From positions 62,001 through 126,000 of the IMG/VR virus record IMGVR_UViG_3300046517_002304: a DNA stretch of 64,000 nucleotides; one strand, 5' to 3'. The position numbers and the translations under genes are program-made. How positions within the stretch are numbered: position 1 is the first letter of the stretch; each line of letters opens with the position of its first letter. The notes under the pieces are model-generated. The model was given only the letters and a program-made list of their open reading frames with translations. It was not told the DNA's origin and ran no database searches. Below, piece by piece: positions 1,682 through 25,726 of this stretch.

Positions 1682-2515
1682 ATGAAAACTTTTTTAGAAT
1701 ATTTTCAACTATATGAAGACACATCAAATGATGTGCAGATGGCTTTCGGTGATGCCGAAAGTAAGGTAAAAAGTATATTCGCATACCTACACAAGGTTAT
1801 GATGAATACGTGGGGAAAACAGGCTCCATCGTGGGATGATCAATTAAAAAACAAGGTAATCGGTGAGCTACAAAACGTTATTGACAAGCTTAAAGGAAAA
1901 GTAAATAAAACCGAAGCATGTGATGCCGCAAAAATGGCAGTCAAAGAAAGCATTGTTTTGCTTGAAGGCGGCGCAATTCCAGATTGGATGCAAGGTATGG
2001 TGGGGCAGAATCGCACCGTTACAGTGGACCGTATGTTAAATGCGATGCAGGCCGAAGTAATTAAAATACTGCATAGTTTAAGAGACGAAGTACTAGTTCA
2101 GAAAGTTAGTAATGTTGCCGGTTCAGTTGAGAAAGTTGGCCGCAGAGTTTCTACAAATGCTTCTAAGAATATTCGCAATGTAGGAAAAAGTATTCAAAAT
2201 CAAATTTCGCAAGGCGTTAAAGTTCAGCAGAGCATGAGTGGAGCAGAAAGAAGTACCGCTAAATGGAATCTTGAACTACTTGCTTCCGCTCTACAGTCAA
2301 GGCCGGATATTAAGCTTTATTCTGGTGCATCTGGGACTAGACAGTTAAAGTTTGATCCTGCTGACCCTATACAAATGGCAAGTGTTCTAGACAAGGCTGG
2401 AAAAGAAAGAACATTTAGAATTAAAGTTAACGGAAAATATCATGACTTTGATATTACCCATGAAGGCGAAACAAGTAGGGTAATTGAAATGATTAAAGGT
2501 AACGAAGATGTTTAA
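1682..2515 (+). CDS. Hypothetical helical protein with capsid-targeting-like N-terminus (MKTFLEYFQLYE)
   Basis: ORF-track start is TTG 1643; ATG 1682 gives the N-terminal motif shared with 13 other ORFs. Confidence 0.7.
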   Translation: MKTFLEYFQLYEDTSNDVQMAFGDAESKVKSIFAYLHKVMMNTWGKQAPSWDDQLKNKVIGELQNVIDKLKGKVNKTEACDAAKMAVKESIVLLEGGAIPDWMQGMVGQNRTVTVDRMLNAMQAEVIKILHSLRDEVLVQKVSNVAGSVEKVGRRVSTNASKNIRNVGKSIQNQISQGVKVQQSMSGAERSTAKWNLELLASALQSRPDIKLYSGASGTRQLKFDPADPIQMASVLDKAGKERTFRIKVNGKYHDFDITHEGETSRVIEMIKGNEDV

Positions 2516-2738
2516 GTTATGGTTAACAGAAGATAGCGACATTCGTATATCATGGCTTAGTGGCAACGGCAATACGATTAGAATTGTGTATCCTACTGGC
2601 GTATATGAATACGAAACTGATTATGGTCCAGTGGTTTTAGCTTCTGTTCGTAAGAACAAGTTCAAAACTGGGCAACTGGCCAGCGATCTGAAAAAGATGG
2701 TTGAAAGAGGCCATGCAACAGTTAAGAAAATACAGTAG
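2508..2738 (+). CDS. Small hypothetical protein with capsid-targeting-like N-terminus (MFKLWLTE)
   Basis: 76 aa ORF overlapping the upstream stop; shared N-terminal motif. Confidence 0.65.
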   Translation: MFKLWLTEDSDIRISWLSGNGNTIRIVYPTGVYEYETDYGPVVLASVRKNKFKTGQLASDLKKMVERGHATVKKIQ

Positions 2739-2898
2739 ATTGTTTGATTATTCTGTATTTTATAAACTTATCGTTTTCTATTACACTTACTATTGCTATT
2801 CCGAAGCATTTTCTTAAAATAGGGTTTAAGAGTATTTTTAGTAAAGTCCTGTGAGCTACCGGCTTGCCATCTTCATATATTAGTCCAAGGTTAAGCAT
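2722..2898 (-). CDS. Small hypothetical protein (58 aa, MLNLGLIYEDGKPVAHRTLLKILLNPILRK...)
   Basis: Hand-translated ORF below the track cutoff; fills an otherwise empty gap. Confidence 0.4.
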   Translation of the reverse strand: MLNLGLIYEDGKPVAHRTLLKILLNPILRKCFGIAIVSVIENDKFIKYRIIKQSTVFS

Positions 2899-2907
2899 AT
2901 ATATCGC

Positions 2908-3219
2908 ATGATTCCGTTTAAGTTATTTATAAAAGAGTCTATCTCGGCCCGATTACACGCGGATCAAAAGACATCTGCTAATAAGGAATTAGATCATTTA
3001 TCATCAAAGTTATGGCCTAAAATCCCCTTCCTTATGATAGCCGAAATTTTGGGAAAGTATGAAATATCATTTGATCCTAGAAATATTACTAGGTCATTAG
3101 ATGGAGAAGTTGATTTAGACATACTGTATTCAGGACTTCCAGTTGTTAATTCAAAGTTGGTAATTGTATGGTATCATATGGGGCAAGGTTCATTTAAAAT
3201 TAGATCTTACTTGAAGTGA
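2908..3219 (+). CDS. Putative internal head protein, paralogue of 9174..9491
   Basis: MIPFKLFIKE N-terminus; TATATA-N4-ATG; shares W..IP...I..IL and LY.G.PV.NS.L...WY.M..G with 9174..9491. Confidence 0.7.
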   Translation: MIPFKLFIKESISARLHADQKTSANKELDHLSSKLWPKIPFLMIAEILGKYEISFDPRNITRSLDGEVDLDILYSGLPVVNSKLVIVWYHMGQGSFKIRSYLK

Positions 3220-3234
3220 AAAATAATTTTTGAA

Positions 3235-3396
3235 TTAGCCGTAATAATCTGGATATTGTTTTTTTAGTTCAGCATAGCGATCTGCTTCACGCTTCATCCA
3301 TTCGGGCCATGCTTCTACTTCCTTTTTGACTAAGTCCATTTGTTCTTTAAGCCATCCTGGTTTTAGTCCTTCGTTGTACTTTATTTCACTTCGCAT
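3235..3396 (-). CDS. Small hypothetical protein (53 aa, MRSEIKYNEGLKPGWLKEQM...)
   Basis: Hand-translated; start overlaps the stop of the upstream minus-strand ORF. Confidence 0.55.
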   Translation of the reverse strand: MRSEIKYNEGLKPGWLKEQMDLVKKEVEAWPEWMKREADRYAELKKQYPDYYG

Positions 3397-3637
3397 TCTT
3401 CAAGTCCTCAAAAATTACATCTTCGTAATAAATTCTATGCTCTTGCATGGTAGCATTTTTTAAAGTATGCTTTGCTATAGCCTTACGTTTATTGTCGTAA
3501 TCAATTACCTCTATATTTTTCATTCCCTTCCATAGATTAAGGTCATTGACGGTGACTGGAAGCCAATTTTTATACTTGTCTAGTTCGGGTAAATCAGCAA
3601 CCACAGATTCTACTCCATTTATTTTTATAATCAGCAT
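3386..3637 (-). CDS. Hypothetical protein
   Basis: 83 aa ORF starting 3 nt after the gp46 stop. Confidence 0.55.
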   Translation of the reverse strand: MLIIKINGVESVVADLPELDKYKNWLPVTVNDLNLWKGMKNIEVIDYDNKRKAIAKHTLKNATMQEHRIYYEDVIFEDLKNAK

Positions 3638-3640
3638 ATT

Positions 3641-5599: not shown

Positions 5600-5635
5600 A
5601 CACTTATTATATCGCCAAAAAACGATATATAACTT

Positions 5636-5923
5636 ATGGACTTTTACAAGTTTCTTAGTTTAATAGAGGCTCCTGCTCCCATGCCTCCAGCAGGTGGCGC
5701 ACCTGGGCCAATGCCTAATGCTGGACCAATGCCAGCCGCTCCACCAGGTCAGCCACCGCAAGCAGGAGCACCCCCACCAGAGCCACCAGGACCGCCAGGC
5801 ACAGAGCCACCACCAGATGGGCAAGATCAGCCAGTTCCTGATGTAGAAGTGCCTACAATGGACGCCTGGAGCGTTTTAGACAAGTTTGTTAAAAATAGCA
5901 AGGGTAAGAAAGCTAAGCCATGA
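5636..5923 (+). CDS. Pro/Gly/Ala-rich protein with capsid-targeting-like N-terminus and basic tail
   Basis: MDFYKFLSLIE, APAPMPPAGG..., C-terminus KSKGKKAKP; TATATA-N4-ATG. Confidence 0.7.
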   Translation: MDFYKFLSLIEAPAPMPPAGGAPGPMPNAGPMPAAPPGQPPQAGAPPPEPPGPPGTEPPPDGQDQPVPDVEVPTMDAWSVLDKFVKNSKGKKAKP

Positions 5924-6774
5924 ACTTTAAGAGCTGGTTATTGACCGAAATGCCTATAACCAAGTTCCAGTTGGCTGGAGATTGGAGTGATAATGCGCCT
6001 ACTAGAAAATTTAAGAGGGCTGACATAGGAATATTGACAAGTTTAAAAGGCGTAGAAAAAATACATAAGAAATGGTCAAATACCAAAGATAATTTTGAAT
6101 TATATTTTGTTAGGTCTAAAGATGCATCAAAATACGAGCAGATAGGCGAAGTTGATCTGCAATGGGTAAAAGATAATTTGGGATTACACTTAGCTCCATC
6201 AGAAGACGCTATTACAGTTATATTTACCGGAAATGTTGGCGGCACAAATGCTATGCCTATGAGCGCTTGGATTATAGCACATCGTGTTGGCCAGGCTCTT
6301 ATGGGAAGAAAGACGACTCATGAAGTTTTTGCAGAGCATTTTGTAGAAAACGTAAAAAGAGATTTCCGGGATATTTTAGAATGTATTTATAACAGAAAAT
6401 ATGACGTAGAAAATACCCGGGATTATTCTGCTCGGAATAGAATGGAACAAAAAATACAAGATGACATAATTTTACTTGCACAATCCGTGGCAACAATGAG
6501 GTCTGCAAGAGAAAAGAAAATTAATACGTTTTATGAATTTTGCTATGAATTAGTAGCACAATATGTTATAACTGGTCACGTCAAATTTAATCCTTTGCCA
6601 AAGGAAGTTTTTACAGGAAGACTTTGGGGTAAAGAGAGATATAAGGCTAGCTCTGGAATAACCGAACAAGACATGGATGGCTGGAATCAACGTCTTAAAA
6701 CTATGTCAAGGGATTATGAATATTATCTTGATCAGACGTTTGGGAGTATGATTGGCAAAATATTTGTGATGTAA
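5920..6774 (+). CDS. Hypothetical protein with capsid-targeting-like N-terminus; degenerate zincin-like WIIAHRVGQA segment
   Basis: MNFKSWLLTE; 284 aa; ATGA overlap with the upstream gene. Confidence 0.7.
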   Translation: MNFKSWLLTEMPITKFQLAGDWSDNAPTRKFKRADIGILTSLKGVEKIHKKWSNTKDNFELYFVRSKDASKYEQIGEVDLQWVKDNLGLHLAPSEDAITVIFTGNVGGTNAMPMSAWIIAHRVGQALMGRKTTHEVFAEHFVENVKRDFRDILECIYNRKYDVENTRDYSARNRMEQKIQDDIILLAQSVATMRSAREKKINTFYEFCYELVAQYVITGHVKFNPLPKEVFTGRLWGKERYKASSGITEQDMDGWNQRLKTMSRDYEYYLDQTFGSMIGKIFVM

Positions 6775-6777
6775 TTT

Positions 6778-7605
6778 TTAATCTCTGTATCGGTCGGCAA
6801 CTCTACTAATTGGCACTTGGAATTCTACTTGCGATTTATAATAATCTTCGGTATTTTTTTCACCAGTTATCATTTCTAAAAACTCAATCCATTTATCCCC
6901 GTTCCAAGAATAAACTCTACCCCAAGAATACTCTGGTTTTTGTAATTCTTGTATTACCTTTTGATTAAACTTGTACCCTTCTTCGCCGTCAAGAATTCCG
7001 AAACTACTATGTTGCATTAAGTCATGTAGGTAATTTAATATTATGTGCTCTACATTTGGCTGTGATTGTCTTTGAAATCTAGTTGATGTTTTATTTCCTG
7101 ATGGGCTGATGTCGGGAACCTTGCCTCTATTTGCTAGATTAATAAATTTCCTAATGGGAATCTCTGCATGGCTTTCTACTGGATATATTACTCCAGTAAT
7201 ATACTTTGGGGGAATGTCGCGCTTTACCATTGTTTGCAAATGACTTTCTCTATCCCATTTTTCTCTATCGTCTACATCTGGTTCTAGCAAAGATGCAGGA
7301 ACTTCTAAAATAAAAATTATTTCTTTTCCACCGAAATTCATTACTGCTTTGTGAGAGTACATGTCAGCTCGGCCAGATGAAAAAGTAAAAAATATTCCAG
7401 GGCTTGTATTTTTATAATTCATTCTTGTCTTGTCAAATTTTAGGCCACCCTGAACAATTTCCCAGAAAAACTTTGTGCTTGTTCCGTGATAAACAACAAT
7501 TTTTTTGTTGCCTAGTGATTTCTTAAATTCAGGCTTATCAAATGGATCATGAACGATTGATAAATCAATCGGAGATTCGGAAACAAGCCATTTTCTAAAA
7601 TTCAT
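6778..7605 (-). CDS. Putative ADP-ribosyltransferase-fold protein with capsid-targeting-like N-terminus
   Basis: MNFRKWLVSE from ATG 7605; VYHGTS...GGL...PGIFFT...ADMYS...FILEV...DIPPKYI pattern typical of ART/PARP-like folds; TAAATA-N5-ATG. Confidence 0.7.
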   Translation of the reverse strand: MNFRKWLVSESPIDLSIVHDPFDKPEFKKSLGNKKIVVYHGTSTKFFWEIVQGGLKFDKTRMNYKNTSPGIFFTFSSGRADMYSHKAVMNFGGKEIIFILEVPASLLEPDVDDREKWDRESHLQTMVKRDIPPKYITGVIYPVESHAEIPIRKFINLANRGKVPDISPSGNKTSTRFQRQSQPNVEHIILNYLHDLMQHSSFGILDGEEGYKFNQKVIQELQKPEYSWGRVYSWNGDKWIEFLEMITGEKNTEDYYKSQVEFQVPISRVADRYRD

Positions 7606-7647: not shown

Positions 7648-8697
7648 ATGAAACAAGTTTTAATCTTCAGCGATGCTCATATTTCTTTACACAAAGGTTC
7701 TTTGGACAGAATGCAAGACTGTCTGAACGCGCTGGAGTGGGTGTTCACAACCGCTAAGCAAAAAAATATTGACACAGTTATTTTTGTTGGTGATTTGTTT
7801 CAAGACAGGCAGAAAATACAGGTTATAGCATATCAAAAGACATTTGAGATACTTGAAAAACACAAAGACATTAACCTGTATCTTTTAATCGGCAACCACG
7901 ATATGTGGAACTCTGAGAGTAGAGAAATATCTAGTATTTTTCCATTGCGCGCCTTACCAAAGGTAAAAATTATAGATCAGCCGTGTTGTCTTAATATTAA
8001 GGGCGTTAACGTAGACTTTCTTCCATACACCAAGAATCCCAAAGAATGTGTGGAAAATAACTTTAAAGAAAAGTCAGACGTTTTATTCGGCCATTTGGCG
8101 ATTGACGGAGCATACTTAAATACCTTTTATAATACCGTGTCAGAAGTATCTGTTGAATATGAGGGGGATATGGTTAAGGTAGATGTCGGCGTATTTAATG
8201 GTTGGAAGAAAGTTTTACTTGGTCATTACCACGGCGCACAAAAAGTTAATGAGATAGTAGAATACATCGGCTCCCCACTTCAGTTAAACTTTAATGAAGT
8301 GTTTCAGAAGAAACACATTATTGCGATGGACTTGGACAACCTGTTCTGCGAATATATTGAAAACACCTTCTCCCCGCGACACCTAATCGTTAAAGAAAGC
8401 GAAATTGGAAACTATAAGCTAAAAGGTAATTTTGTTAGAATTGAATCTGATAACCTAAGTTCATCTAAAATAATTGATATTAAAAATAGCCTAAGCGGAG
8501 TTGTGTCAACGCTGGAATTTAAAGAAATCAAGTCCAATAAGCACAATGAATTAAAGACAGATCTGGATAAAGCTAAAAAGATATTGTCTGAAGGTGAGAT
8601 TGTTGAGAAGTATATTTCATTAGTAGAGACTAGTCTTGAGAAAGAAAAGCTAATGTTAATCGGCAGACAAATTATTCAAAAAGGAACAAGTAGTTAG
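7648..8697 (+). CDS. gp47: SbcD/Mre11-type metallophosphoesterase nuclease subunit (T4 gp47-like)
   Basis: Motifs FSDAH, GDLF, GNHD, GHL, GHYH, YIGSP in canonical order. Confidence 0.95.
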   Translation: MKQVLIFSDAHISLHKGSLDRMQDCLNALEWVFTTAKQKNIDTVIFVGDLFQDRQKIQVIAYQKTFEILEKHKDINLYLLIGNHDMWNSESREISSIFPLRALPKVKIIDQPCCLNIKGVNVDFLPYTKNPKECVENNFKEKSDVLFGHLAIDGAYLNTFYNTVSEVSVEYEGDMVKVDVGVFNGWKKVLLGHYHGAQKVNEIVEYIGSPLQLNFNEVFQKKHIIAMDLDNLFCEYIENTFSPRHLIVKESEIGNYKLKGNFVRIESDNLSSSKIIDIKNSLSGVVSTLEFKEIKSNKHNELKTDLDKAKKILSEGEIVEKYISLVETSLEKEKLMLIGRQIIQKGTSS

Positions 8698-9140
8698 CTT
8701 TTTGGTCCAGTTTTCTGTTTTGGCGGATTTAACATCGGTAATTTAGCAGGCTCTTTTTCTAGGTTTCTCATAAATGGAACTACTTCTTTAGCAATTTCAG
8801 ATGCTGAAGTTCCAGTAATAGCCTTTGTTCCATGTACCGCGACAGATTTATTGCCGCGATTATAGAGTCCTTTAGAGATTACGAATTTACCAGTTCCTGC
8901 GTGATAAGATAGGATTCCCGCCCATTCTCCGTCGTCAAAGTGTCTAGTGGCAATTATAATTCTTTGTGGCTTCTCATCAAATACCTGTTTAATGTGAAAT
9001 CCTGCCGACTTCAGCGCCGCAGATACATACCCTAGAGTTAACTTGGCATAGCCTTCTAAAACTTCCGGAAGGGCAGTACGGTAATTAATATTGATACTAT
9101 ACCTATTTGAGTCTTCGTTTAAGAATTCGCTAAATTTCAT
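8694..9140 (-). CDS. Hypothetical protein with capsid-targeting-like N-terminus (MKFSEFLNE)
   Basis: 148 aa ORF; basic Pro-rich tail; TATATA-N2-ATG. Confidence 0.7.
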   Translation of the reverse strand: MKFSEFLNEDSNRYSININYRTALPEVLEGYAKLTLGYVSAALKSAGFHIKQVFDEKPQRIIIATRHFDDGEWAGILSYHAGTGKFVISKGLYNRGNKSVAVHGTKAITGTSASEIAKEVVPFMRNLEKEPAKLPMLNPPKQKTGPKS

Positions 9141-9173: not shown

Positions 9174-9491
9174 ATGCAATTTTCTGACTATATTTCCATT
9201 ACAGAAGCAAAAGAAAACAACATACCATCTGGTGTAAAGAAGATTGTAAATGATCAGCTTCATCAGATTGGTACTAAGTATTGGAAGTCTATTCCTATGA
9301 AAGAGATAGATGCTATATTAAAGCAGCAGGGCATCACGTATCAGGACGATGGTTTCTTTTTAACGGGAAGAGATAGTCGGGACAGCTTTGAGCTTATATA
9401 TAATGGTATGCCCGTATCTAACTCTATGCTAATTTTAACTTGGTATAAAATGCCGTCTGGTAATTGGGAAGTTGTCGCATATCTAAGCTAA
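9174..9491 (+). CDS. Putative internal head protein, paralogue of 2908..3219
   Basis: MQFSDYISITE; aligns end to end with 2908..3219; AGGA upstream. Confidence 0.7.
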   Translation: MQFSDYISITEAKENNIPSGVKKIVNDQLHQIGTKYWKSIPMKEIDAILKQQGITYQDDGFFLTGRDSRDSFELIYNGMPVSNSMLILTWYKMPSGNWEVVAYLS

Positions 9492-9492
9492 C

Positions 9493-9843
9493 ATGGACTT
9501 TAAACACTGGGTAAATGAAGTTAAAACAATTCCTTTAGGAGATTGTTTTAGGTTTGCCACTATGCGGGCAGTTGAAATGATCGGCGATGGCATTATACCG
9601 CCAAAAGATATAGTTGTAGTTCATGCTATAGTACACCCTAGATGGGGCGGAAATCCATATCCTCATGCATGGATAGAATCTAGGGGCAAGTGCTGGGATT
9701 GGCAAATGCGTCAGACTAAAACGTATTCTATACCTGTCGCTGATTTCTATAAGGAATACAATCCTACAGAAATCAAGCGTTACACTGGTAATGAAGCGTT
9801 AAGAACTATGATTAAAACTGGCCATCATGGGCCATGGAATTAA
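9493..9843 (+). CDS. Putative papain/transglutaminase-fold (Cys-His-Asp) protein with capsid-targeting-like N-terminus
   Basis: MDFKHWVNE; GDCF ... HAWIE ... WD spacing consistent with a catalytic triad. Confidence 0.6.
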   Translation: MDFKHWVNEVKTIPLGDCFRFATMRAVEMIGDGIIPPKDIVVVHAIVHPRWGGNPYPHAWIESRGKCWDWQMRQTKTYSIPVADFYKEYNPTEIKRYTGNEALRTMIKTGHHGPWN

Positions 9844-11970: not shown

Positions 11971-12204
11971 TTACTTCTTCTTACTCTTCTTCCTGCCTAG
12001 TTCAACAGCGAGTGATCCCGTTGGAGATCTAGCTGCGGAGTAGAGTGGTGGGTAAATACTGTCGTCTCCATTTGGAGCGGCAGTTTCGGGCGGGTAGCCT
12101 TTAATTCCAGGAAAAGACGAAACGGTTCTAATGGACTTCTCTGTTAGTTCTGGAAGAGCGATATCTTTGTTCTCTGTTTCTGCCCACTGACTGAATGTAA
12201 TCAT
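11971..12204 (-). CDS. Small Pro-rich protein with capsid-targeting-like N-terminus and basic tail
   Basis: MITFSQWAETE ... GRKKSKKK; TATATA-N3-ATG. Confidence 0.65.
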   Translation of the reverse strand: MITFSQWAETENKDIALPELTEKSIRTVSSFPGIKGYPPETAAPNGDDSIYPPLYSAARSPTGSLAVELGRKKSKKK

Positions 12205-12264: not shown

Positions 12265-12981
12265 ATGCCTACGCAACTTGCCTACCCGCCGAACGATACC
12301 AAGATAGAAATCACCAAGATTAAAGGTGATTTGCTAGATAATAAAACTAGGCTAAAATGCAGATGCAGTTTTTGTGACAAGCATGTTGCCATATGTCATG
12401 AAAAAAAGACGGTTCATGACATAATAACATCAGGACGCGGATTTCACTGCTCTTTTTGCGTCAAGCATAATTTTTATACACGACAAAGCAAGCACATACT
12501 TGGCATGAGTTTTAGGGGCATAATTGCACAGTATTACTATTGTTTATATCGCAGTACGCCTACTAAGATGTACTTAAGTGAATTAAAGGAATATATTGAG
12601 CTGCACGAAAGACTTGGATCTAATAATCCCTTGTTTTTATATGATCCTGAGAGCTATTGCTGGTTTATAGATTTCTCAAAGGTCGGTCGGCATAAGAAAG
12701 AGCTGTCTCTTAAGTACGTTTTAGCCACAACAGCGGAAATATTGGCATCTTTTAATTTGTACAAATACTATCCTGATTTACAGGGATATCCACTATATCA
12801 AAAATTTCATGATGCTATTTTAGAGTTTTACTCTAAGCGTTCTAGGCCAGCAGACAAGCGAATACTTTCTCCTACGCTAATAAAGTGCGGGACTATTTTT
12901 TCTACTGAGGCTAAGGTGACCTTAGAAGATACTAGGGGTTTTTCTGCTCAAAATTTAATTCCTATGGATAAGTTTAAATGA
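12265..12981 (+). CDS. Hypothetical protein with N-terminal zinc-binding motifs
   Basis: CRCSFC ... HCSFC; 238 aa. Confidence 0.6.
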   Translation: MPTQLAYPPNDTKIEITKIKGDLLDNKTRLKCRCSFCDKHVAICHEKKTVHDIITSGRGFHCSFCVKHNFYTRQSKHILGMSFRGIIAQYYYCLYRSTPTKMYLSELKEYIELHERLGSNNPLFLYDPESYCWFIDFSKVGRHKKELSLKYVLATTAEILASFNLYKYYPDLQGYPLYQKFHDAILEFYSKRSRPADKRILSPTLIKCGTIFSTEAKVTLEDTRGFSAQNLIPMDKFK

Positions 12982-13616
12982 TTAAATCCACCGAGGTAAT
13001 TGAATTAATACAGAGTGCCAAGCATCATTCTGAACGTGCTCATAATAGTCTTAAGCATGTTAGGGAACATTATAAGTCGCAGATAGGCTTTAGTATTTTA
13101 AGTACTCATACTTTTTGTCGTGGCCAGATTGCTTTGTCCAGAAGTATTTTGCGAACTCTTATGAAGAAGATAAATGAAAGTATACCTCAAAGTACTCCAA
13201 ATCAAGAGAACGGTGGTACGATTATTTGGCGTAATAAATGCGGCCAAAAACATAGATTAGATGGTCCCGCTGTTACGTTTTTAAATGGCACTAAAGAATG
13301 GTGGGCTAACGACAAGAGGCATAGGACAAATAATCCTGCTGTTATATTTTATAATCAAGATGAAGAATGGTGGGATAATGGGGCGCTACATAGAGTAGGT
13401 GGTCCAGCTATTCTTTATTCTAGCGGTAGAGAGGAGTGGTTTAATGATGGTGTATTACATAGGGTTAATGGCCCAGCATTGATCACAGCAAACGGAGTGA
13501 AAAAATGGTATTTTCATGGATTATTACATCGTACAGATGGTCCTGCTATAGATTGGGGCGACGGGCAAAAAGAATACTGGCTTAATGGGAAGAAAACAAA
13601 GGTCTTTTGTGATTAG
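12978..13616 (+). CDS. LHRxDGPA (MORN-variant-like) repeat protein 1, 5 repeats
   Basis: ~23-aa repeats such as HRLDGPAV..NGTKEWW; ATGA overlap with the upstream gene. Confidence 0.85.
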   Translation: MIKSTEVIELIQSAKHHSERAHNSLKHVREHYKSQIGFSILSTHTFCRGQIALSRSILRTLMKKINESIPQSTPNQENGGTIIWRNKCGQKHRLDGPAVTFLNGTKEWWANDKRHRTNNPAVIFYNQDEEWWDNGALHRVGGPAILYSSGREEWFNDGVLHRVNGPALITANGVKKWYFHGLLHRTDGPAIDWGDGQKEYWLNGKKTKVFCD

Positions 13617-14418
13617 CATTACAAATACGATAACTACCTGCAAAGAACAGGTTTATACTGCACAGAGGCTTGTTAAAAATAATAGTAAATTAACAAGCTC
13701 TTTAACTAAAATACAAAGAGCCAAACAGTGTCATTTTCATATTGCGTTTGCAAGAACATCATTACTTAAATATGTACAGGCTTTAAAAGATAAGACGGAT
13801 AAGTCTAGTAAAAAAGTTGTGCATAATGACCAGAATGGAATTGAGTGGACTCTTAATGATGTTTTGCACAGAGATAATGGACCTGCTGTTGAGAATCCTG
13901 ATGGCCATCAGGAGTGGTGGTTTCATGGCGAGAGACACCGAGATAATGGTCCGGCAATTATAAGGTCCGATGGGAGCTGTGAATGGCTTATAAACAACAA
14001 AAGGCATAGGGGTGATGGATGGCCTGCTGTTACCACTGTAGATGGACATAAAGAATGGTGGATTAATGGCAGATTGCACAGAGTAGAAGGCCCAGCAGTT
14101 ATATTTGCTGACGGTGCGCAGGAATGGTATTATGGTAACAAATTACATAGAGTAGGTGGCCCTGCACGAATTACTTCTAGTAATGAAACACAATGGTTCT
14201 ACCATGGTAGGTTGCACCGAGAAGGTGGCCCTGCGATAGAACGAGAAAATGGCTATAAGGCATGGTATATGGATGGATTTTTTCATAATTTATCTGGTCC
14301 AGCTATAGAGCAGCCAGATGGATATAAAGAATGGTGGGTCAGTGGAAAACAGTTCCAAGAAAATGAATTTAATGTATTAACAAGCAAAGTTATCACAGAG
14401 GCAAAATCATGTCCATAA
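13609..14418 (+). CDS. LHRxDGPA repeat protein 2, 7 repeats
   Basis: Same repeat; probable GTG start at 13609 (track start 13585). Confidence 0.85.
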   Translation: MISITNTITTCKEQVYTAQRLVKNNSKLTSSLTKIQRAKQCHFHIAFARTSLLKYVQALKDKTDKSSKKVVHNDQNGIEWTLNDVLHRDNGPAVENPDGHQEWWFHGERHRDNGPAIIRSDGSCEWLINNKRHRGDGWPAVTTVDGHKEWWINGRLHRVEGPAVIFADGAQEWYYGNKLHRVGGPARITSSNETQWFYHGRLHREGGPAIERENGYKAWYMDGFFHNLSGPAIEQPDGYKEWWVSGKQFQENEFNVLTSKVITEAKSCP

Positions 14419-15848
14419 AAGGTAAGCTAGCCGATGTTCGTGCGATGGTACAAGCTATTAAAGATAATATTATCCTTGCAAAGCACGCAAAATTGTCTAA
14501 GGATGTAGATAGCTATTTCGCCCATAGTAGTAGCCAACTGCTTGTCCAAAGGATAGCAGTTGAAGAGATTAAAAAAGTAATTCAGAAGATGCCGATATGC
14601 TATGCATCTAAGAGCGGTGAAAAAAGATGGTTTTTAAATGGACAACTTCATAGAAAACGTGGTCCTGCTGTTTTATTAGCGAATGGCGAGCAATCATGGT
14701 ACTTACATGGCAGTCTTCACAGGCTAGATGGGCCAGCCTTAATTTATGCCGATGGAGGAAAAGAGTGGTGGTCATTTGGCAGAGAGCACAGGCTAGACGG
14801 TCCCGCTATTGAGCGTAATGGATGCGCTAAAGAGTGGTGGATAAACGGAGAGAAGTTAACCGAGTCAGAGTTTAAGTTAAGAAAAAAGGAACCCAAATAT
14901 TTAGACTGGACTTTGACTCCAACGCATATTTTAAAAATAGATGGAACTAGGGAATGGCGGTTGCATGATGAACTTCATAGGATAAACGGCCCCGCATTTA
15001 TCAGTAAAGCAGGCCACGAAGAATGGTGGCAAAAAGGGTTAAGGCATAGAGAAGACGGCCCTGCTGTTATATTTGTTTGTGGGGATAAACAGTGGTGGGT
15101 CAAAGGTCTTATGCATAGGGTAGATGGTCCAGCGGTTGAAAAGATTGATGGCACTAAAAGTTGGTACCAATATGGAGTGCTTCATAGAGAAGACGGCCCA
15201 GCTATTCAGTCCACTTGGAACAATGTCATTGTAACCAAAAATTGGTATTTAAATGGTAAGTTGTTAACAGAAGATCAGTTTAGAGCAAGAATTAAAACAA
15301 GGCCGAAAAGAAAAAGTAATGGACCGCTAATAGTTAGTGAAGAAAAGCCTACATTGAAAATTTCTGCGTTAGGCAATAAAGAGTGGCGATTGCGCAATGT
15401 GCTTCATCGTGAAGACGGTCCTGCGATAGAGCAGTTAGACGGTACTAAAAGTTGGTGGCGACATGGGAAGCTTCATCGTGAAGATGGGCCTGCATTAGAG
15501 TGCACACAGGGATTTCATGAATGGTATATTAATGGTCAGCAATTATCAGAGGAAGAGTTTAATTTAACTCTTAATCCTTGTAAAAAAGAAGTTCCGCAAG
15601 TGGGATTCTTCAGCAGAATTGCATCTACTGGTGCCACTGAGTATTATTTTAATGGAAGACTACACAGAGAGGGCGGTCGTGCGATAGAGTTTCCTGGCGG
15701 TGCTGGCGTTTGGTGCCTTTATGGTAATTGCGGGAGTAAAGAATGGTATGATAATGAAATAAAGAAAATAAAATCAGAACAACAAAAAGATGAGCAAAAC
15801 AAGAATGAATTAAACGCTATGCTTGAGAAGATCAATCAGGTTTTGTGA
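14409..15848 (+). CDS. LHRxDGPA repeat protein 3, 10 repeats in four blocks
   Basis: Blocks of 3, 4, 2 and 1 repeats; the first three end in a W..NG..L[TS]E..F cap. Confidence 0.85.
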   Translation: MSIKGKLADVRAMVQAIKDNIILAKHAKLSKDVDSYFAHSSSQLLVQRIAVEEIKKVIQKMPICYASKSGEKRWFLNGQLHRKRGPAVLLANGEQSWYLHGSLHRLDGPALIYADGGKEWWSFGREHRLDGPAIERNGCAKEWWINGEKLTESEFKLRKKEPKYLDWTLTPTHILKIDGTREWRLHDELHRINGPAFISKAGHEEWWQKGLRHREDGPAVIFVCGDKQWWVKGLMHRVDGPAVEKIDGTKSWYQYGVLHREDGPAIQSTWNNVIVTKNWYLNGKLLTEDQFRARIKTRPKRKSNGPLIVSEEKPTLKISALGNKEWRLRNVLHREDGPAIEQLDGTKSWWRHGKLHREDGPALECTQGFHEWYINGQQLSEEEFNLTLNPCKKEVPQVGFFSRIASTGATEYYFNGRLHREGGRAIEFPGGAGVWCLYGNCGSKEWYDNEIKKIKSEQQKDEQNKNELNAMLEKINQVL

Positions 15849-18615: not shown

Positions 18616-19131
18616 CTAGTCGCCGTCCCAGTCCCGGTCCATTCCCATAGTTTTTCCCTGTACCATTCGTTTCCAGTAATCTTCACTAGATTCATGGTCT
18701 TGGAAGTCTAGCGGATTACTGGTTCCAACTTCATCTTTGACCCTTCTTACCATATCTTGATAATTAGTGAACGTAAATTTTATGTCAGGGTCATTCCGGT
18801 CCTCTTTGGTGTCCATTCCATAGATTGCAGCTTCAAGTTCTTCTAATTGCGTGTATGCGTCCGAGTCCATTTCTGCATATAGATCAACTTGGCATGATCT
18901 TTCATGATAACTGCCCCAAGACGTATCTCTAAGAATGATTTGCTTGCCCTTTAGTAATTCCCATGTTTTAGGATTTTTAACATACCATTCCCATTTAGCT
19001 ACTGTACGCGGGTCTTTGGCAGGAACTTCTGGCATGTCTCCATATCCATGGTGGCCAGAAGTAAATCCTCTAATTTTTAGAAGATGTACATAGAAGGGCG
19101 TAGCTGATTCTAAAAACGTTCGGAAATTCAT
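18616..19131 (-). CDS. Hypothetical protein with capsid-targeting-like N-terminus (MNFRTFLE)
   Basis: 171 aa; ATGA overlap with the upstream gene. Confidence 0.7.
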   Translation of the reverse strand: MNFRTFLESATPFYVHLLKIRGFTSGHHGYGDMPEVPAKDPRTVAKWEWYVKNPKTWELLKGKQIILRDTSWGSYHERSCQVDLYAEMDSDAYTQLEELEAAIYGMDTKEDRNDPDIKFTFTNYQDMVRRVKDEVGTSNPLDFQDHESSEDYWKRMVQGKTMGMDRDWDGD

Positions 19132-19400
19132 GATAATTCTTTATTGCTCTTAATTTTTTCTATAATTTCCTGTAGTAAAGCGATTGTAACCGGGCTAACA
19201 TGCCCATTGCTACCAGCAATACGTAAAGCGTCAGTAAGTTCCTGTAGTGCGTTTTTTGCTTTCTTCCTAAGTTGTATTCCGGTTTGGGAGGACATAAGAT
19301 TGACATTCCAAAAATCTTGGTCGTTACTGGGTTGACGGGGCCTAGGCGGGGGAGGAATCTGAAAATCGGCTTCTTGTAGGTGTTGTTGGAATGTTTTCAT
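19128..19400 (-). CDS. Hypothetical protein with capsid-targeting-like N-terminus (MKTFQQHLQE)
   Basis: Closest match to the T4 IP peptide MKTYQEFIAE; TAAATA-N4-ATG; PPPPRP tract. Confidence 0.72.
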   Translation of the reverse strand: MKTFQQHLQEADFQIPPPPRPRQPSNDQDFWNVNLMSSQTGIQLRKKAKNALQELTDALRIAGSNGHVSPVTIALLQEIIEKIKSNKELS

Positions 19401-19723: not shown

Positions 19724-19727
19724 TAAT

Positions 19728-20162: not shown

Positions 20163-20165
20163 GGG

Positions 20166-21827
20166 ATGATAAGAGAAGATTTATTAAGTAAGCCATATGC
20201 TGAATATAAGGCCAGTAATTATATTCAGTACGAGTGTGATTATTGCGGGAAGGTATTTGAGCGTGATAAGAAGTATAGAGAGCGCTCAGTTGCGTATGTA
20301 AATAAGGATAGTTGCGGAGACAAACCGTGTACGCAGAAGAAAAAAGAAGACGTATCTATGTTTAGATACGGTACTAAAAGCCCAGGCCAATCTCAAGAAG
20401 TTAAAGATAGGATAAAACAATCTAACATAGAAAAATTTGGCTGTGGATCTTATTTTGAAACTGATAAATTTAAAGAAAAAAGGAAAGAAACTCTAATAGA
20501 AAATTTTGGTGTAGATAGTCCGCTTAAATCGCCAGAGATTAGAAAAAAGATTGAAAAAACTTGCCTTGAGAAGTATGGTACAGAAAATTATTTCCAGACT
20601 GATGAATTTAAAAATAAGTCTAAAGAATCAAGCCAAGAAAAATATGGCACGGACTCACCTATGCAGCACCCAGATGTTCTGGCAAAAAGAGACGAAACAT
20701 GTATTGAAAAATACGGGGTGAAAAATTATACTCAAACCGATGAGTATTGGGAAAAAAGAAAAGCCAGTTCATTAGAAAAGTATGGGGTAGAGCATACCCA
20801 CCAACTTCCAGAAGTACAAGAGAAGATGAAGAAAACCTGTCTAGAAAGGTATGGTTTTACTAATTATGCGATGAGCGAAGAATCTAAACAAAGGTACATT
20901 AAAACATGTATGGAAAAGTATGGCGTTCCTAATCCTTTATGTTTAGAAGAAAATCAAGTTTATGGAAAAGCACAAAAGGAAATACAGGATTGGCTCCAAG
21001 CACTGGGATTAGTCTTTAAAAGTGATTACAGTGTCTTAAAGAAGAAGCAAATTGATTTATTTAATGATGATTTAAAATTGGGCATTGAATATTGTGGATT
21101 ATTTTGGCATAATGAAGTTTCCCCTACTCCGAGAGATAGCCGATATCATTATCGTAAATATAAGGCATGTAATGAAAACGGAGTTTCTTTGATTACTATT
21201 TTTGAGGATGAGTGGACTCTTAATAAAAATAAATGCAAAGATATATTAAAAGGAATACTTGGCATTTATGATATTCGCTTGTATGCTAGAAAATGCTCTG
21301 TATCTCTTATTGATAAAAAACAACTAAGAGATTTTTGTGAAGCAAATCACATACAAGGCTCTAACAAAAGGGCGATAGTTTGCTTCGGCTTATTTTATGA
21401 TCAAGAATTAATGGGCGTTATGTCTTTAGGTTATCACCCACGAAATACAATTAAGGATGTTATTGTACTAGACAGAATGTGTTTTAAGAACGGCATTCAA
21501 GTAGTTGGTGGAGCCAGTAAGTTATTTAAACAGTGCGCAACATGGGCTGTTAATAATAGTTATAAATCTATTGTCACATGGAGTGACAATAGATGGAGTG
21601 ATGGTAAGGTGTATGATATTTTGGGATTTGATTTAGATAAGAAGCTTCCTCCCGATTATAGTTATGTAAACTTACACAATGTTAGACCTGGAAGAACAAG
21701 CAAGCAATCGCAGAGAAAGCTTTTAACTGGATGCCCTAAAGATAAAACAGAGCACGAGTTTGCTTTGGAAAATGGCTTTGCCAGGATATGGGATTGTGGT
21801 AAGAAAAGATGGATTTTTAATCTTTAG
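20166..21827 (+). mobile_element. Homing-endonuclease-like protein: EKYG repeats, PD-(D/E)xK-like nuclease and C-terminal GNAT/Mom-like domain
   Basis: Multiple [CS][LI]EKYG-type repeats; IDLF...IEYCGLFWH...YKAC...LITIFEDEW; then NHIQG...LDRMCF...GGASKLF...TWSDNRWSDGKVY..LGF. Confidence 0.7.
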
Positions 21828-22714
21828 CCCACGAATACGCCCATAATATCACCGAAGCGATTCATCAATCTTTCTTCCCATGCTCTTTTCGCCTCTATAC
21901 CTTCTTGAAGCATAGATTGTCCGTTTAACATCATGCCGCCATTAGGGCCTGGTGGGCTTGGAAACTTGGACCAAATTCTTCCTAGCATAATCTGAGCAAA
22001 AGCCAGTGCTCCTTCTTGCATAGAAATTTGTACTTCTCTCCAGTCTTTACATTTTTGAATGTAATGAACTATGACTTGTTGAGTATGGCAAGGAATCGGA
22101 TATATCTTGAGGTGCCCTTGATCTCCTATAAATTCCCAAGAACCTATAGAAGAGCTAACTCTATTATACATTTGTTCGTATTGCTTATATAACACCCATT
22201 CGCTAGTATTACCCCAAACAGGGAACTGTGGTGTAAGAAACCCGAACGTACTATAAGATCCATACATAAATTCTAAAGGTACCGATCCCCCCAAATCTGT
22301 AGATGTATTAGATGGATTGCTTAGTTGTCTAAAAAATACATTTCTAACAAATCCTATGTCCGCTGGAAGCTCATATACTGATTTGCCAGGCATCGTCTGA
22401 AAGACGTAATATTGGAAAAACTCTCTTGGTGCCCATTCTTCTACGATTCTTAGAGACTCATCAACAGCTAAATCTAACTGCTGATCGCTCAACTCAATAC
22501 GAATTACTGGCGCTCCAAGCATTAAGAGCACGTAATCTTTAATTTGCTCCCTTACCTTATCTCGGTTTGGTCTTGCTGTAATATTTGTAGGACAAGGAAC
22601 TGGACTACCTACGCACCCTGGTCCGAACTCCATTTCTATATCACTAGGGCATTTGGCCGTATTACTACTAGATGGCATTGCAATGTAAAATAAGTTATCA
22701 GTACAGTTGGGCAT
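21824..22714 (-). CDS. gp13: Neck protein (T4 gp13-like)
   Basis: IKDYVLLMLGAPVIRIELSDQQLDLAVDESL; EGALAFAQIMLGRIWSKF...GGMMLNGQSMLQEG. Confidence 0.9.
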   Translation of the reverse strand: MPNCTDNLFYIAMPSSSNTAKCPSDIEMEFGPGCVGSPVPCPTNITARPNRDKVREQIKDYVLLMLGAPVIRIELSDQQLDLAVDESLRIVEEWAPREFFQYYVFQTMPGKSVYELPADIGFVRNVFFRQLSNPSNTSTDLGGSVPLEFMYGSYSTFGFLTPQFPVWGNTSEWVLYKQYEQMYNRVSSSIGSWEFIGDQGHLKIYPIPCHTQQVIVHYIQKCKDWREVQISMQEGALAFAQIMLGRIWSKFPSPPGPNGGMMLNGQSMLQEGIEAKRAWEERLMNRFGDIMGVFVG

Positions 22715-22734
22715 GTTACTAATATATATTCAGC

Positions 22735-23040: not shown

Positions 23041-23201
23041 ACTGTATAAACAGGACATGGCCTGCCACATTTAGGGCATTTGACCTTTTTGCCATTACAA
23101 GTTTCGCATCCATCCGCTTTAGTAAAGCTGTCAATATTCTGATGCACTTCTTTAAATCCACAATAATGGCAATGGACGATATAATTTTTATTCTCTTGCA
23201 T
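23037..23201 (-). CDS. Small Cys-rich zinc-ribbon protein (54 aa)
   Basis: Hand-translated: CHYC...CETC...CPKCGRPC; start overlaps the upstream stop. Confidence 0.6.
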   Translation of the reverse strand: MQENKNYIVHCHYCGFKEVHQNIDSFTKADGCETCNGKKVKCPKCGRPCPVYTV

Positions 23202-23637
23202 TGATTAGCTTCTTTAGAACGTATTCTTTACTAACAATTTGGATATCATCTAGGCTAGCTTTATCAAAAATTCTTTGATATGTTTTGCCGTGAAATAGTC
23301 CGTTTAAATTAGCTGCAAAAAAGTGCTTATACTTCATCATATCTGGACTAGGATTAATCATATTTGCGTAAATTACTCTACTGTTGTCTCCAGCTCCGTA
23401 AATATCGCCCTTCCACACAAAAAACATAGCAAATTGTTCGCTATCAACGATACTTCTAATTTGATTAACTCTATCATTGTCATGATATTCGTGTAAGGCG
23501 TCAATTTCATCAGACGTTTTACCAGCAATGCTTAAATTTGTAGGAACAATCATTTTTTTAACCGTAAGATGTCCCGAAGTTTTACTAAGAATTGGCCCTA
23601 GTTTGTCTGCATCACTTCCCATCGCCTTGCCGTCCAT
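23188..23637 (-). CDS. Hypothetical protein; its frame stays open upstream to the A9 tract at 23760..23768
   Basis: 149 aa from ATG 23637; ~40 further in-frame codons upstream lack an ATG. Confidence 0.65.
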   Translation of the reverse strand: MDGKAMGSDADKLGPILSKTSGHLTVKKMIVPTNLSIAGKTSDEIDALHEYHDNDRVNQIRSIVDSEQFAMFFVWKGDIYGAGDNSRVIYANMINPSPDMMKYKHFFAANLNGLFHGKTYQRIFDKASLDDIQIVSKEYVLKKLINARE

Positions 23638-23753
23638 GCCGAAATAAACGTTAATAGGGCCGGTTGTAAAATCTAATGGAGTCTTTTTTGTAGAATTTCT
23701 AGAGCCCGAAATAGAAGTAGTTATACTAGGAGCGTTTGGGAGAACGTCTTCCT

Positions 23754-23924
23754 TTAAACTTTTTTTTTATGTTTTCTAGGGAAAAAGTCTCCCCTAGCGA
23801 CAAACATTGCGGGTCTTGGGAATGTTGCAATCGCGGCCGTAGTAGTTGTCCCGGCAGAAACGCCGGCAGGAGCAGCTCCTGCATCTTCTTTTAACTTTTT
23901 ATCTAACCATTCAGAAAACTTCAT
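23754..23924 (-). CDS. Small protein with capsid-targeting-like N-terminus (56 aa, MKFSEWLDKKLKE...RKHKKKV)
   Basis: Hand-translated; TATATA-N6-ATG; ends just after an A9 run. Confidence 0.65.
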   Translation of the reverse strand: MKFSEWLDKKLKEDAGAAPAGVSAGTTTTAAIATFPRPAMFVARGDFFPRKHKKKV

Positions 23925-23973
23925 ACAAGGTATATATGAAACGGTTGATTCGGATTTTGGATATAGACATAAA

Positions 23974-24005
23974 AAAACAGCCGTGTAAATTTACACGGCT
24001 GTTTT
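23974..24005 (-). terminator. Intrinsic terminator (perfect 32-bp palindrome)
   Basis: AAAACAGCCGTGTAAA/TTTACACGGCTGTTTT just downstream of 24025..25263; U-run on the minus strand. Confidence 0.85.
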
Positions 24006-24024
24006 AATTCTAACAATTTACTTA

Positions 24025-25263
24025 TTATAGGTCCGCACTTACTTCAAGGGCAGCGCTGGTAGCGTTACCGCTGTCAGCAAGATGAGCGCCGTGACCCGTT
24101 GTGAGTCCGGAAGCTACTGTGACGGCAATTAGCGCAGCAGTTTGACTGCCGGCCGAGCCGCTTACTGCTGTTGCAGCAGCCGAAGCTGACGCATCTGTTT
24201 GAACTGTCATATCAGCAACTAAGCCTTGGAACGCAACCGTTCCAGCGGCGATTTTATGCGAATATGGTAGTATAATTCTAGCAACTGTGGTTGAGTTAGC
24301 ATAACCGGCAGCATACACTTGGCTTGCGGCTGTTACACCAAATCGTTCAAAGAATCGCTTGCACATTGATAGTTCGGCGAAGTGAGGGCGAGGATACCAG
24401 TTAACTTCAACCGGTGAATTAAATAGTCCAGCCTGAGTAACCTTCATGGCAAATCCAGTTGCAGCAGTGTCCTGTGTCCAAACGAACACCATTAGGTTAT
24501 TGGCTGTTGCACCGACTTGTCCACCAACGATTAGATCGGTCCATGTATTTACGGCCGTTGGGGTTACTGCGGCAGAAACAGCGGTGACAGTTAGTGTAGT
24601 TCCAGAGAAAAATCCGCCGGAAGTATAGCTAGCTGAAGTCCAAGTATTAACGAAAGCAGAAGTGGCCGCGTCAGCAGTGCCTGTCCACTCAAGGATGGCA
24701 GCGCGAACTGGCTGAAGATTTGTAGCTTGGAAGCGGCACTGAAACGTAACGTAGTTACCGCGCATGTCAACGGTATCTTTGTTCTCAACAATCTGAGCGA
24801 CACCAAATCGCTGATTTGCGCCTGTTCCGATTGCGTTCTGTGTGACTAAGCAGCCGTACTCTGCGGCATCTCCAGTTGTTCGTGCAGCAGCAACACCGGT
24901 TGTCTGCGTAAGAACATACCAACGGTCAGCAATGTAAGTGTCTGTTGGGTTGCCGAATGCAACTGTGGCAGCAGCAGATGACAGCGTAGTGCCAGTAGAG
25001 CTGTTTAGAACGATAGCTGTATTAGATGTTAAGGATGAGACTGTTTTACCAGTGCTCACAGTAGTTCCGGTAACTGTCATGCCAGGACGAACGGTCGCCA
25101 CGACGTTTGTTAGAGTGCTTACTGCGGTGCTTGTAGTACCGGTTGTTACACCAGTTTGCGTGCCGCCTAGTGTAGTTCCGCGCTGCCATACATCAAATCC
25201 GCCGTTATGGAGAATGTTATTTGGTAGCATGCCGCGAGGATTGCTTAGAATTGTATTTGCCAT
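24025..25263 (-). CDS. Virion fibre/decoration protein with carbohydrate-binding-like domain
   Basis: NILHNGGFDVWQRG...ADRW pattern of phage fibre proteins; Thr/Ala/Gly-rich; CTAAATA box plus AGGA leader. Confidence 0.7.
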   Translation of the reverse strand: MANTILSNPRGMLPNNILHNGGFDVWQRGTTLGGTQTGVTTGTTSTAVSTLTNVVATVRPGMTVTGTTVSTGKTVSSLTSNTAIVLNSSTGTTLSSAAATVAFGNPTDTYIADRWYVLTQTTGVAAARTTGDAAEYGCLVTQNAIGTGANQRFGVAQIVENKDTVDMRGNYVTFQCRFQATNLQPVRAAILEWTGTADAATSAFVNTWTSASYTSGGFFSGTTLTVTAVSAAVTPTAVNTWTDLIVGGQVGATANNLMVFVWTQDTAATGFAMKVTQAGLFNSPVEVNWYPRPHFAELSMCKRFFERFGVTAASQVYAAGYANSTTVARIILPYSHKIAAGTVAFQGLVADMTVQTDASASAAATAVSGSAGSQTAALIAVTVASGLTTGHGAHLADSGNATSAALEVSADL

Positions 25264-25321
25264 TCTGTTTATTTCCTATAAAATGTTAGACTTAAATTAT
25301 TTAGTGTGATCAGATCAAATT

Positions 25322-25726
25322 TTATCGTAGTGGCGGTGAATTTCCACCTAATCCGCCTAATCCTCCACTTGACATACCCCCCATACCTCCCATACCACCT
25401 CCGCTATCTGACATTCCTGGTGGAGGCTTTAAGAATAAGTCCATATTACTGCCGGTTATTGTGTAGATTTTTCCAGCATTTGAACTCTTTTCTTCATATG
25501 GGAAATGTCCAAACCCTAAGTCCTTAATTCTTAAAAAGTTTTTACCATAACCAATTATTTTGAATCTAGTAGGAGATTTAATTTCATCTATCTCTCCATT
25601 TGCGCTCTTAAGTTTCATTGGTGGGTTGATTACAATAAATTGTCTTAAAAAGTCAGATGGCGATACTTGTAGCTTTTTTTGAAAAGTGCCAAGCATGCTC
25701 TCATATAAAAACTGTTTAAATCCCAT
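25322..25726 (-). CDS. Protein with capsid-targeting-like N-terminus (MGFKQFLYE) and Gly/Met-rich tail
   Basis: ATG 25726; TATATA-N4-ATG; GGMGGMGG tail. Confidence 0.7.
   Translation of the reverse strand: MGFKQFLYESMLGTFQKKLQVSPSDFLRQFIVINPPMKLKSANGEIDEIKSPTRFKIIGYGKNFLRIKDLGFGHFPYEEKSSNAGKIYTITGSNMDLFLKPPPGMSDSGGGMGGMGGMSSGGLGGLGGNSPPLR

Follow-up and report, generated by a model that had tools for sequence, protein, structure and literature searches.

We analysed a stretch of 64,000 nucleotides, referred to here as the window, that covers roughly 62 to 126 kb of the 511,233-bp contig IMGVR_UViG_3300046517_002304 of a soil/rhizosphere phage. Fourteen open reading frames (ORFs) in the window begin with a short peptide of one general form, M-x(0-2)-aromatic-x-x-aromatic-aliphatic-x(0-2)-E, which is 8-13 residues long and which we call the tag. 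A sequence-only reading of this DNA had listed the 14 starts with their N-terminal peptides and had proposed that the peptide is a capsid-targeting sequence (CTS) of the kind known from bacteriophage T4, used to load a large set of proteins into the phage head for injection. All 14 starts and peptides were recovered as listed, and the sharing of an N-terminal tag by 14 otherwise unrelated ORFs is confirmed as a real observation.

The first five tagged ORFs lie on the plus strand. ORF 1 (1682-2515; 277 residues) begins with MKTFLEYFQLYE, is started by gene callers at the ATG at 1682 and has a mature part with an isoelectric point (pI) of 9.2. It gives a weak match to the C-terminal part of a head-protease PHROG (phrog_3017, E 3e-4); as a gp22-type scaffold it was considered and rejected, the profile comparison returning a probability of 0.2%. 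ORF 2 (2508-2738; 76 residues, MFKLWLTE) has a pI of 9.6. ORF 3 (2908-3219; 103 residues, MIPFKLFIKE) is a paralogue of ORF 8, and both it and ORF 4 (5636-5923; 95 residues, MDFYKFLSLIE), an acidic protein rich in Pro, Ala and Gly, have a TATATA box 4 nucleotides (nt) upstream. In ORF 5 (5920-6774; 284 residues) the tag MNFKSWLLTE is followed by Met; its function search gave a weak nucleotidyltransferase lead only, and a homologue in contig L025 shares 28% identity with it. ORF 6 (6778-7605, minus strand; 275 residues, MNFRKWLVSE) has a predicted ADP-ribosyltransferase fold, of the PARP-like H-Y-E type by Pfam. ORF 7 (8694-9140, minus strand; 148 residues, MKFSEFLNE, pI 9.7) gave weak functional leads only; its orthologues in the related contigs L004 and L005 are 43-45% identical, the L004 copy beginning MDQLDKAFEDWLE. 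Two plus-strand genes follow, ORF 8 (9174-9491; 105 residues, MQFSDYISITE), the paralogue of ORF 3, and ORF 9 (9493-9843; 116 residues, MDFKHWVNE), which has a predicted transglutaminase-like cysteine-peptidase fold (YunG/Peptidase_C93-like).

The other five are all on the minus strand. ORF 10 (11971-12204; 77 residues, MITFSQWAE(TE)) is the poorest fit to an [LIV]-x-E ending, and ORF 11 (18616-19131; 171 residues, MNFRTFLE) is acidic. ORF 12 (19128-19400; 90 residues, MKTFQQHLQE) is the nearest in form to the T4 peptide MKTYQEFIAE; a tag like it, MKTFQQFMTE, occurs in L004 among other tagged ORFs that begin MRFAEFLDVIE and MEHLNFRKWLTE. ORF 13 (23754-23924; 56 residues, MKFSEWLDKKLKE, pI 11.1) is the least certain as a gene. 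ORF 14 (25322-25726; 134 residues from the ATG at 25726, MGFKQFLYE) has a tail rich in Gly and Met and a TATATA box 4 nt upstream, which falls within the longer mechanical ORF there. Three of the 14 starts (1682, 7605 and 25726) are of this kind, with a longer mechanical ORF around them. At 7605 the gene callers chose a GTG 8 codons upstream and the orthologues begin at the tag; for the internal-start ORFs as a group, independent gene calls and orthologues favour starts at or near the tag. Just beyond the window the contig carries two more tagged ORFs, which begin MWQTNSFKMFVESE (278 residues) and MNFTDFIQE (516 residues).

The tag is far more frequent in the window than in random sequence or in the genes of other T4-like phages. 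The pattern set out in the sequence-only reading, M-x(0-2)-F-x-x-[FWYH]-x(1-6)-E, is matched at 19 of 2,500 ATG codons in the six frames, and 14 of these 19 head the listed ORFs (56-284 residues). Among ORFs of at least 45 residues taken from their first ATG, 13 carry the tag, whereas 100 Markov-1 random windows gave 0.51 such ORFs on average and never more than 3. A control set was formed from genes called likewise near the head protease in other T4-like phages (about 75 loci); only 4 of 1,137 (0.35%) are tagged there, which gives a binomial P of about 1e-18 for the window. The motif is also tied to its place in the protein: the core pattern [FY]xx[FWY][LIVMF]x(0-2)xE was counted 9 times among the five N-terminal residues of proteins in the window and once in their other 19,747 residues. 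An origin of these peptides in chance, or in a diverged paralogue family that has retained its N-terminus only, is effectively refuted. One pair of paralogues does exist, the genes at 2908 and 9174 (29% identity, E 7e-14), and an all-against-all BLASTP search found this pair alone, as had been claimed; the bodies of the 14 proteins differ in length, composition and fold, and hundreds of unrelated ORFs on other contigs begin with the tag. Unrelated bodies carry it and orthologues keep it, so the description of the tag as portable holds. No real gene from 26 to 64 kb is headed by it. The further claim that it is absent from enzyme, tail and nuclease genes needs a caveat as to enzymes, because two of the tagged proteins have predicted enzyme folds.

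Many tagged ORFs were also said to have a late-promoter box of their own. A TATATA box does lie within 40 nt of 8 of the 14 tagged starts and of 12 of 60 untagged ones (Fisher p = 0.016), and 7 of the 20 TATATA hexamers in the 64-kb window precede a tagged start by no more than 12 nt. The box differs from the T4 late-promoter sequence TATAAATA, and it is not private to the tagged set, since it also stands directly upstream of the gp13-like adaptor gene and of tail-fibre genes; the idea of TATATA as a late promoter reserved for tagged genes was rejected, structural and other genes sharing the box. The pattern is compatible, as far as sequence can tell, with co-expression of the tagged genes and the virion genes. 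TATATA is found 2-8 nt before the ATG of many tagged and structural genes with no Shine-Dalgarno sequence there (at 2898, 5626, 9143, 12208, 22723, 23931, 25731, 46685 and 61091), the sheath, tube and certain other genes carry GGAG in its place, and the palindromic box is often common to two divergent genes. Such an arrangement may indicate leaderless or near-leaderless transcripts.

The position of the box bears on whether the conserved element is a peptide at all. It might be conserved as nucleic acid, either as a 5' coding element for leaderless or Shine-Dalgarno-less translation or as a recombination cassette, with no function for the peptide. Many of the tagged genes have the TATATA box 2-8 nt before the ATG and lack a Shine-Dalgarno sequence, and their first codons are A/T-rich, both of which would suit such an element. 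We consider it very improbable nonetheless. Synonymous codons at the Phe, aliphatic and Glu positions vary at genome-wide ratios: TTT to TTC is 11:3 in the tags and 631:237 in the genome as a whole, GAA to GAG is 11:3 and 729:244, and the aliphatic position is written as TTA, CTT, CTA, ATA, ATT or GTA. Untagged genes with the same box at the same spacing lack the motif, and the identities of the Trp, aromatic and Glu residues are kept across tagged phage genomes that range from 25 to 57% GC. Selection acts on the tag peptide and not on a nucleotide element.

At the peptide level the tag resembles the T4 CTS at the positions that matter most in T4. Mullaney and Black reportedly described in 1996 the CTS of the T4 proteins IPI, IPII, IPIII and Alt and its removal by the prohead protease gp21. 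The T4 N-termini, read from NC_000866, are MKTYQEFIAE in ipII and ipIII, MKTFKEF.. in ipI and MELITELFDE in alt, which confirms the T4 peptide that had been quoted for comparison. The first ten residues of IPIII suffice for packaging; residues 4 and 7 serve targeting, residues 8 and 10 serve processing, and gp21 cleaves after L/I-X-E, as the earlier reading had it in placing the cut after Glu (PMC9026906). The T-even internal proteins are a diverse set with only the CTS in common (PMC9026906, PMC3012670). All 14 tags have F or Y followed three residues on by F, W, Y or H, and these correspond to the two T4 targeting positions; an aliphatic residue comes next and the Glu one or two residues after it. 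The match to IPII and IPIII thus extends over the residues mapped by mutagenesis, namely the aromatics at 4 and 7, the aliphatic residue at 8 and the Glu at 10, and MKTFQQHLQE and MKFSEFLNE have exactly the T4 spacing. Ten of the 14 tags end in [LI]-x-E and two in V-x-E, while MNFRTFLE and MITFSQWAE deviate; the [LIV]-x-E ending of 12 of the 14 fits the gp21 rule at the level of sequence.

The residue that follows the tag is informative too. Directly after the Glu, a set of 144 distinct tagged ORFs has an excess of S, N, G and A and a deficit of L, I, F, P, T and K, and a preference for small residues there is as expected at a cleavage site. Met follows the Glu in 9% of these ORFs against a background of 2.2% (P = 2e-5, an optimistic value because some of the 144 are orthologues of one another). 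The excess of Met suggests either that tags have been grafted before existing start codons or that alternative, untagged isoforms are made; on the second view each such gene may yield two isoforms, one packaged and one cytoplasmic. Met stands directly after the tag in the window gene at 5920, in L004 at 5951 and L005 at 5585, and also in L009, L018, L116 and others. Gene callers at times start at this Met, so that the tag stays hidden.

The bodies behind the tags are largely without known family. Pfam and PHROGs searches with the 14 tagged proteins gave almost nothing past a hint of an ADP-ribosyltransferase; a lack of known families is typical of internal proteins as well. The mature parts of 10 of the 14 have a pI of at least 8.8, like the basic internal proteins of T4. 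The ADP-ribosyltransferase hint comes from ORF 6, whose own Pfam match to PARP (E 1.8e-4) falls under the curated cut-off. Six homologues share about 45% identity with it, and five of the six carry PF00644. Three homologues begin MKFKEW, MTLSFKNW and MDSFKQW; the other three seemed tagless, and in two of these the upstream DNA holds an in-frame MEFRKWLE followed by Met, so their tags had been missed because the gene caller picked the Met after the tag. The alignment shows an invariant YHGTST and G..F.F, which fits the NAD-binding H-G-[ST] / G-x-[YF]-F core of the ADP-ribosyltransferase superfamily. In an AlphaFold model (pLDDT 79) the tag forms a short helix, of low confidence and separate from the domain, and Foldseek matched the model to Tpt1/KptA, DarT, Scabin and pertussis S1/ADP-ribosyltransferase toxins at E 3e-4 to 1e-2, with TM-scores that are low (about 0.25 query-normalised, 0.35-0.57 target-normalised). 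The model together with the PF00644 matches of the homologues predicts an ADP-ribosyltransferase fold for ORF 6. The transglutaminase-like fold of ORF 9 comes from an Atlas structure search with TM values of 0.6-0.8. Tagged proteins of other contigs include one that has an ArdC N-terminal anti-restriction domain, above the Pfam cut-off, and one with the PolyA_pol (tRNA nucleotidyltransferase) head domain.

The tag is not peculiar to this phage. We searched IMG/VR at the DNA level with a degenerate pattern that encodes M-[KN]-F-[KR]-x-W-[LF]-x(1,2)-E, and among the matches listed 78 of 129 head ORFs of at least 50 residues, nearly all at true ORF starts, on contigs of 20 to 459 kb. A long array is found in L116 (IMGVR_UViG_3300009161_000023, a 198-kb contig), where 13 consecutive same-strand ORFs of 155-746 residues between 259 and 13038 are tagged, with N-termini such as MNFKNWLLNE, MKTFKQFLKE and MKTFIEYINE. 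Three of these proteins were tested against Pfam and had no match, and the only GenBank match to an L116 tagged protein was 51% identical and lay in the unannotated 595-kb metagenomic phage LR756511. The implication that so large a tagged set is unique to the window's phage was accordingly overstated.

Tagged genes keep company with a particular type of prohead protease. A tblastn search with T4 head proteins placed gp20-gp21-(gp22)-gp23 clusters in four of the tag loci; two of these, L031 and L110, have a small tagged ORF with the gp21 homologue on one side and the gp22 homologue on the other. Around the S77 proteases of the clade typified by L046 and L038, tags head 74 of 1,066 and 85 of 924 genes, against 4 of 1,137 near other T4-like gp21 genes, an enrichment of 20-25 fold; all those proteases belong to PF03420 (Peptidase_S77). 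Tag and protease of this type occur together on at least 10 contigs, three of them of 459, 343 and 323 kb, at distances of more than 100 kb in the first two and of about 60 kb in the third. A 444-kb JGI contig has Portal_T4, Peptidase_S77 and Gp23 genes with small tagged ORFs beside the portal gene. That portal gene (L287, 4876-7386; 3300045518 Ga0492778_0000002) contains an intein (Intein_splicing plus Portal_T4). Two lines of evidence tie the window's phage to the L046/L038 clade. Homologues 41-50% identical to the window's DUF7487 and Mom-family protein lie within 10 kb of an S77 protease in 44 related loci, and L004, a relative of the window by four genes at 42-47% identity, has a TerL that shares, over its N-terminal half, 52-55% identity with those of L038 and L344 (459-kb phage). 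As separate observations, several gp21 homologues (L110 4776-5396, L031 4532-5179 and L128 22211-22864) begin MK(A)LITE, with L-I-x-E at residues 3-6, in parallel with the LIE-9 site noted for T4 gp21, and the capsid proteins of the L046 clade begin MNAN.QFLNE-A, like the end of the tag.

The tagged ORFs of L031 and L110 sit exactly at the position of a prohead-core gene, which would suit a different fate for the tagged proteins. The tag could direct them to the prohead core where most of them act as core or assembly parts, like T4 gp67, gp68 and gp22, and are degraded and expelled, so that there is no large injected set. Several members are small, disordered and of low complexity (the Pro/Ala/Gly-rich ORF 4, the 56-residue ORF 13, ORF 14 with its Gly/Met-rich tail), and ORF 1 weakly matches part of a head-protease family. 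Folded, enzyme-like members are hard to fit to such a role, however: the predicted ADP-ribosyltransferase and transglutaminase-like proteins here, and the ArdC-N and PolyA_pol proteins of relatives. The mature parts are mostly basic, as in T4 internal proteins, and ORF 1 has no profile similarity to gp22 scaffolds. As an account of most of the set we regard this as unlikely, and some of the small disordered tagged proteins may still belong to the prohead core and be degraded there instead of being injected.

The tag might alternatively be a short docking or sorting motif for a target other than the capsid. It could be a degron through which a host or phage protease sets the timing of early proteins, it could be recognised by a chaperone or host factor, or it could send proteins to some other compartment that huge phages build. 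The tag is a short amphipathic helix apart from the fold in the model of ORF 6, which would serve such a purpose, the tagged genes are dispersed among non-structural genes of the window, and a tRNA nucleotidyltransferase-like enzyme that carries the tag has no obvious need to be packaged. Against this, the tag fits the T4 CTS positions mapped by experiment, small residues are favoured after its Glu as at a cleavage site, and its enrichment beside one S77 protease clade is matched by tags inside head operons. We judge this explanation to be somewhat less probable still than one in which most tagged proteins are expelled core parts.

We therefore favour, with a probability of roughly 0.65, the view that the tag acts as a capsid-targeting propeptide of the T4 type and that a large set of cargo proteins bears it. 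The two aromatic residues of the tag would dock the newly made protein on the prohead scaffolding core, a gp21-type Peptidase_S77 prohead protease would then cleave after the tag Glu, and the mature protein would stay in the head with the DNA and enter the next host cell with it. In this phage the tag stands on no fewer than 14 unrelated proteins within 24 kb, and on at least two outside the window. The interpretation offered in the sequence-only reading is thus partly supported, and the part of it that concerns sequence holds. Several observations weigh against it. Some tags (MNFRTFLE, and MKTFQQYIE in relatives) end in aromatic-aliphatic-E with no spacer and fit L/I-X-E inexactly, and several tagged proteins are so small and low in complexity that they could be core fillers and not effectors. 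Over about 100 of the contig's 511 kb (from about 55 to 156 kb) a search for gp21, portal and major capsid genes found none, and the contig was absent among the listed matches of protease searches by S77 alignment and in protein databases. Most T4-like head neighbourhoods, including the head region of Pelagibacter phage HTVC008M, are without the tag, which makes the link between tag and gp21 specific to one clade and not general. Our searches found no cultivated phage with the tag and no virion proteome of one.

A broader proposal can be put forward tentatively, and we give it somewhat less than even odds. Phages of a broad, uncultivated T4-like clade of soil and fresh water, whose genomes range from less than 100 to more than 500 kb, may build very large injected proteomes by means of one tag. 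Each genome would encode dozens of effectors, with as many as 13 consecutive genes in one array, and among them would be ADP-ribosyltransferases, ArdC-like anti-restriction proteins and RNA-repair enzymes. The tag would then be a key, usable from sequence alone, to the first-minute weapons of phages that cannot yet be grown.

The genomic setting is that of a large phage with a T4-type tail. The window sequence was found again in at least six soil and rhizosphere runs, and no near relative was found among GenBank phages. Its T4-type morphogenesis genes include a gp13-type head-tail adaptor (21824-22714, minus strand; phrog_211, E 5e-15), which has 47% identity to the Phage_T4_gp13 gene of L004 and a TATATA box in front, the gp15 sheath stabiliser (38420-39367, minus strand), the tail sheath (35763-38072, minus strand) and a T4 baseplate hub. 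The window also carries RNR, SbcCD, methyltransferases and many LamG/BNR tail-fibre genes; the 6 kb upstream of it hold RNR and methyltransferase genes, and downstream, to about 156 kb, the contig has only fibre, methyltransferase and nucleotide-metabolism genes. The protein encoded at 20166-21827 on the plus strand (553 residues) consists of DUF7487, in repeats, and a C-terminal Mom-family domain, the latter suggesting DNA modification.

Several other features of the window deserve mention. Three successive genes at 12978-15848 (212, 277 and 479 residues) are made of W-x-x-G-x-[LR]-H-R-x-[DN]-G-P-A repeats; Pfam gives DUF6745 only, for the last of them, and a similar repeat occurs in L146 (519-kb phage). 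A tail-fibre arsenal occupies 42489-59648 and, in L353, 2246-9988. It contains a 1,391-residue BNR/sialidase-like protein and four Laminin_G_3 paralogues (738-1,028 residues) with N- and C-termini common to all, and a 2,580-residue protein lies just past the window. Tail-tube-like paralogues are encoded on opposite strands at 31599-32237 and 35164-35730, and both are present in the relatives L072 and L091. Probable mobile endonuclease genes are found at 34010-35083, 40846-41886 and 51521-52891, one for a LAGLIDADG_2 protein that also has HTH domains, the other two for proteins in which DUF4379 treble-clef zinc fingers abound; their homologues are dispersed over the head regions of related phages.

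Injected proteins enter the cell along with the DNA and do their work ahead of all phage gene expression; those of T4 include the anti-restriction protein IPI* and the modifier of host RNA polymerase, Alt. To find them has normally required a cultivated phage and proteomics of its virions. If the tag is a capsid address, the injected proteins of a large uncultivated clade, including genomes of more than 300 kb, are marked in metagenomic sequence. Candidate effectors for anti-defence and takeover, most of which lack a known family, could then be listed directly, and this would suggest that the CTS mechanism of T4 is older and more widely used than its T-even examples indicate. The CTS concept is already established for T-even phages and the mechanism itself is not new. 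What appears to be new is the scale of its use, the huge soil phage that carries it and the breadth of the uncultivated clade with the same tag; in the literature searched we found no report of such a tag in uncultivated or huge phages, which does not prove that none exists. The practical value would lie in the mining of injected proteins, and the natural variants of the tag could be of use in T4-style protein-packaging applications.

Three known systems invite comparison. Like the T4 CTS, the tag is an N-terminal peptide of about ten residues on otherwise unrelated and mostly basic proteins, in a genome that also encodes a T4-type neck, tail and baseplate, and one tagged member has a predicted ADP-ribosyltransferase fold, recalling the function of Alt. 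It differs from T4 in being placed on at least 14-16 genes instead of four, in a consensus that is rich in Trp (F-K/R-x-W-L-x-x-E) and often one residue longer, and in its carrier, a 511-kb soil phage without a close GenBank relative; Alt, moreover, belongs to a different (R-S-E) class of ADP-ribosyltransferases, while ORF 6 is PARP-like by Pfam. The giant phages phiKZ, 201phi2-1 and SPN3US load 8-19 processed protein species into the head, and their gp21-related protease cuts after Glu, removing propeptides that are thought to be CTS-like (PMC5694885, PMC9026906). Large size, many head-loaded proteins and a gp21-related protease that cuts after Glu make these phages similar to the system proposed here. 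In contrast, they have no T4-type tail module, and their propeptides are mostly of 80-160 residues or longer, have no common short tag and are cleaved at S/A/G-X-E or A-X-E; the tags in the window, of 8-13 residues and ending in [LIV]-x-E, have neither the long propeptide (mostly of more than 80 residues) nor the S/A/G-X-E site of that group. The cargo-loading peptides of encapsulins offer a third parallel, in that a short terminal peptide loads unrelated cargo into a shell of the HK97 fold, much as is proposed for the tag. They differ from it in being C-terminal and uncleaved, in serving a cellular nanocompartment that involves neither DNA nor injection, and in having no sequence similarity to the tag.

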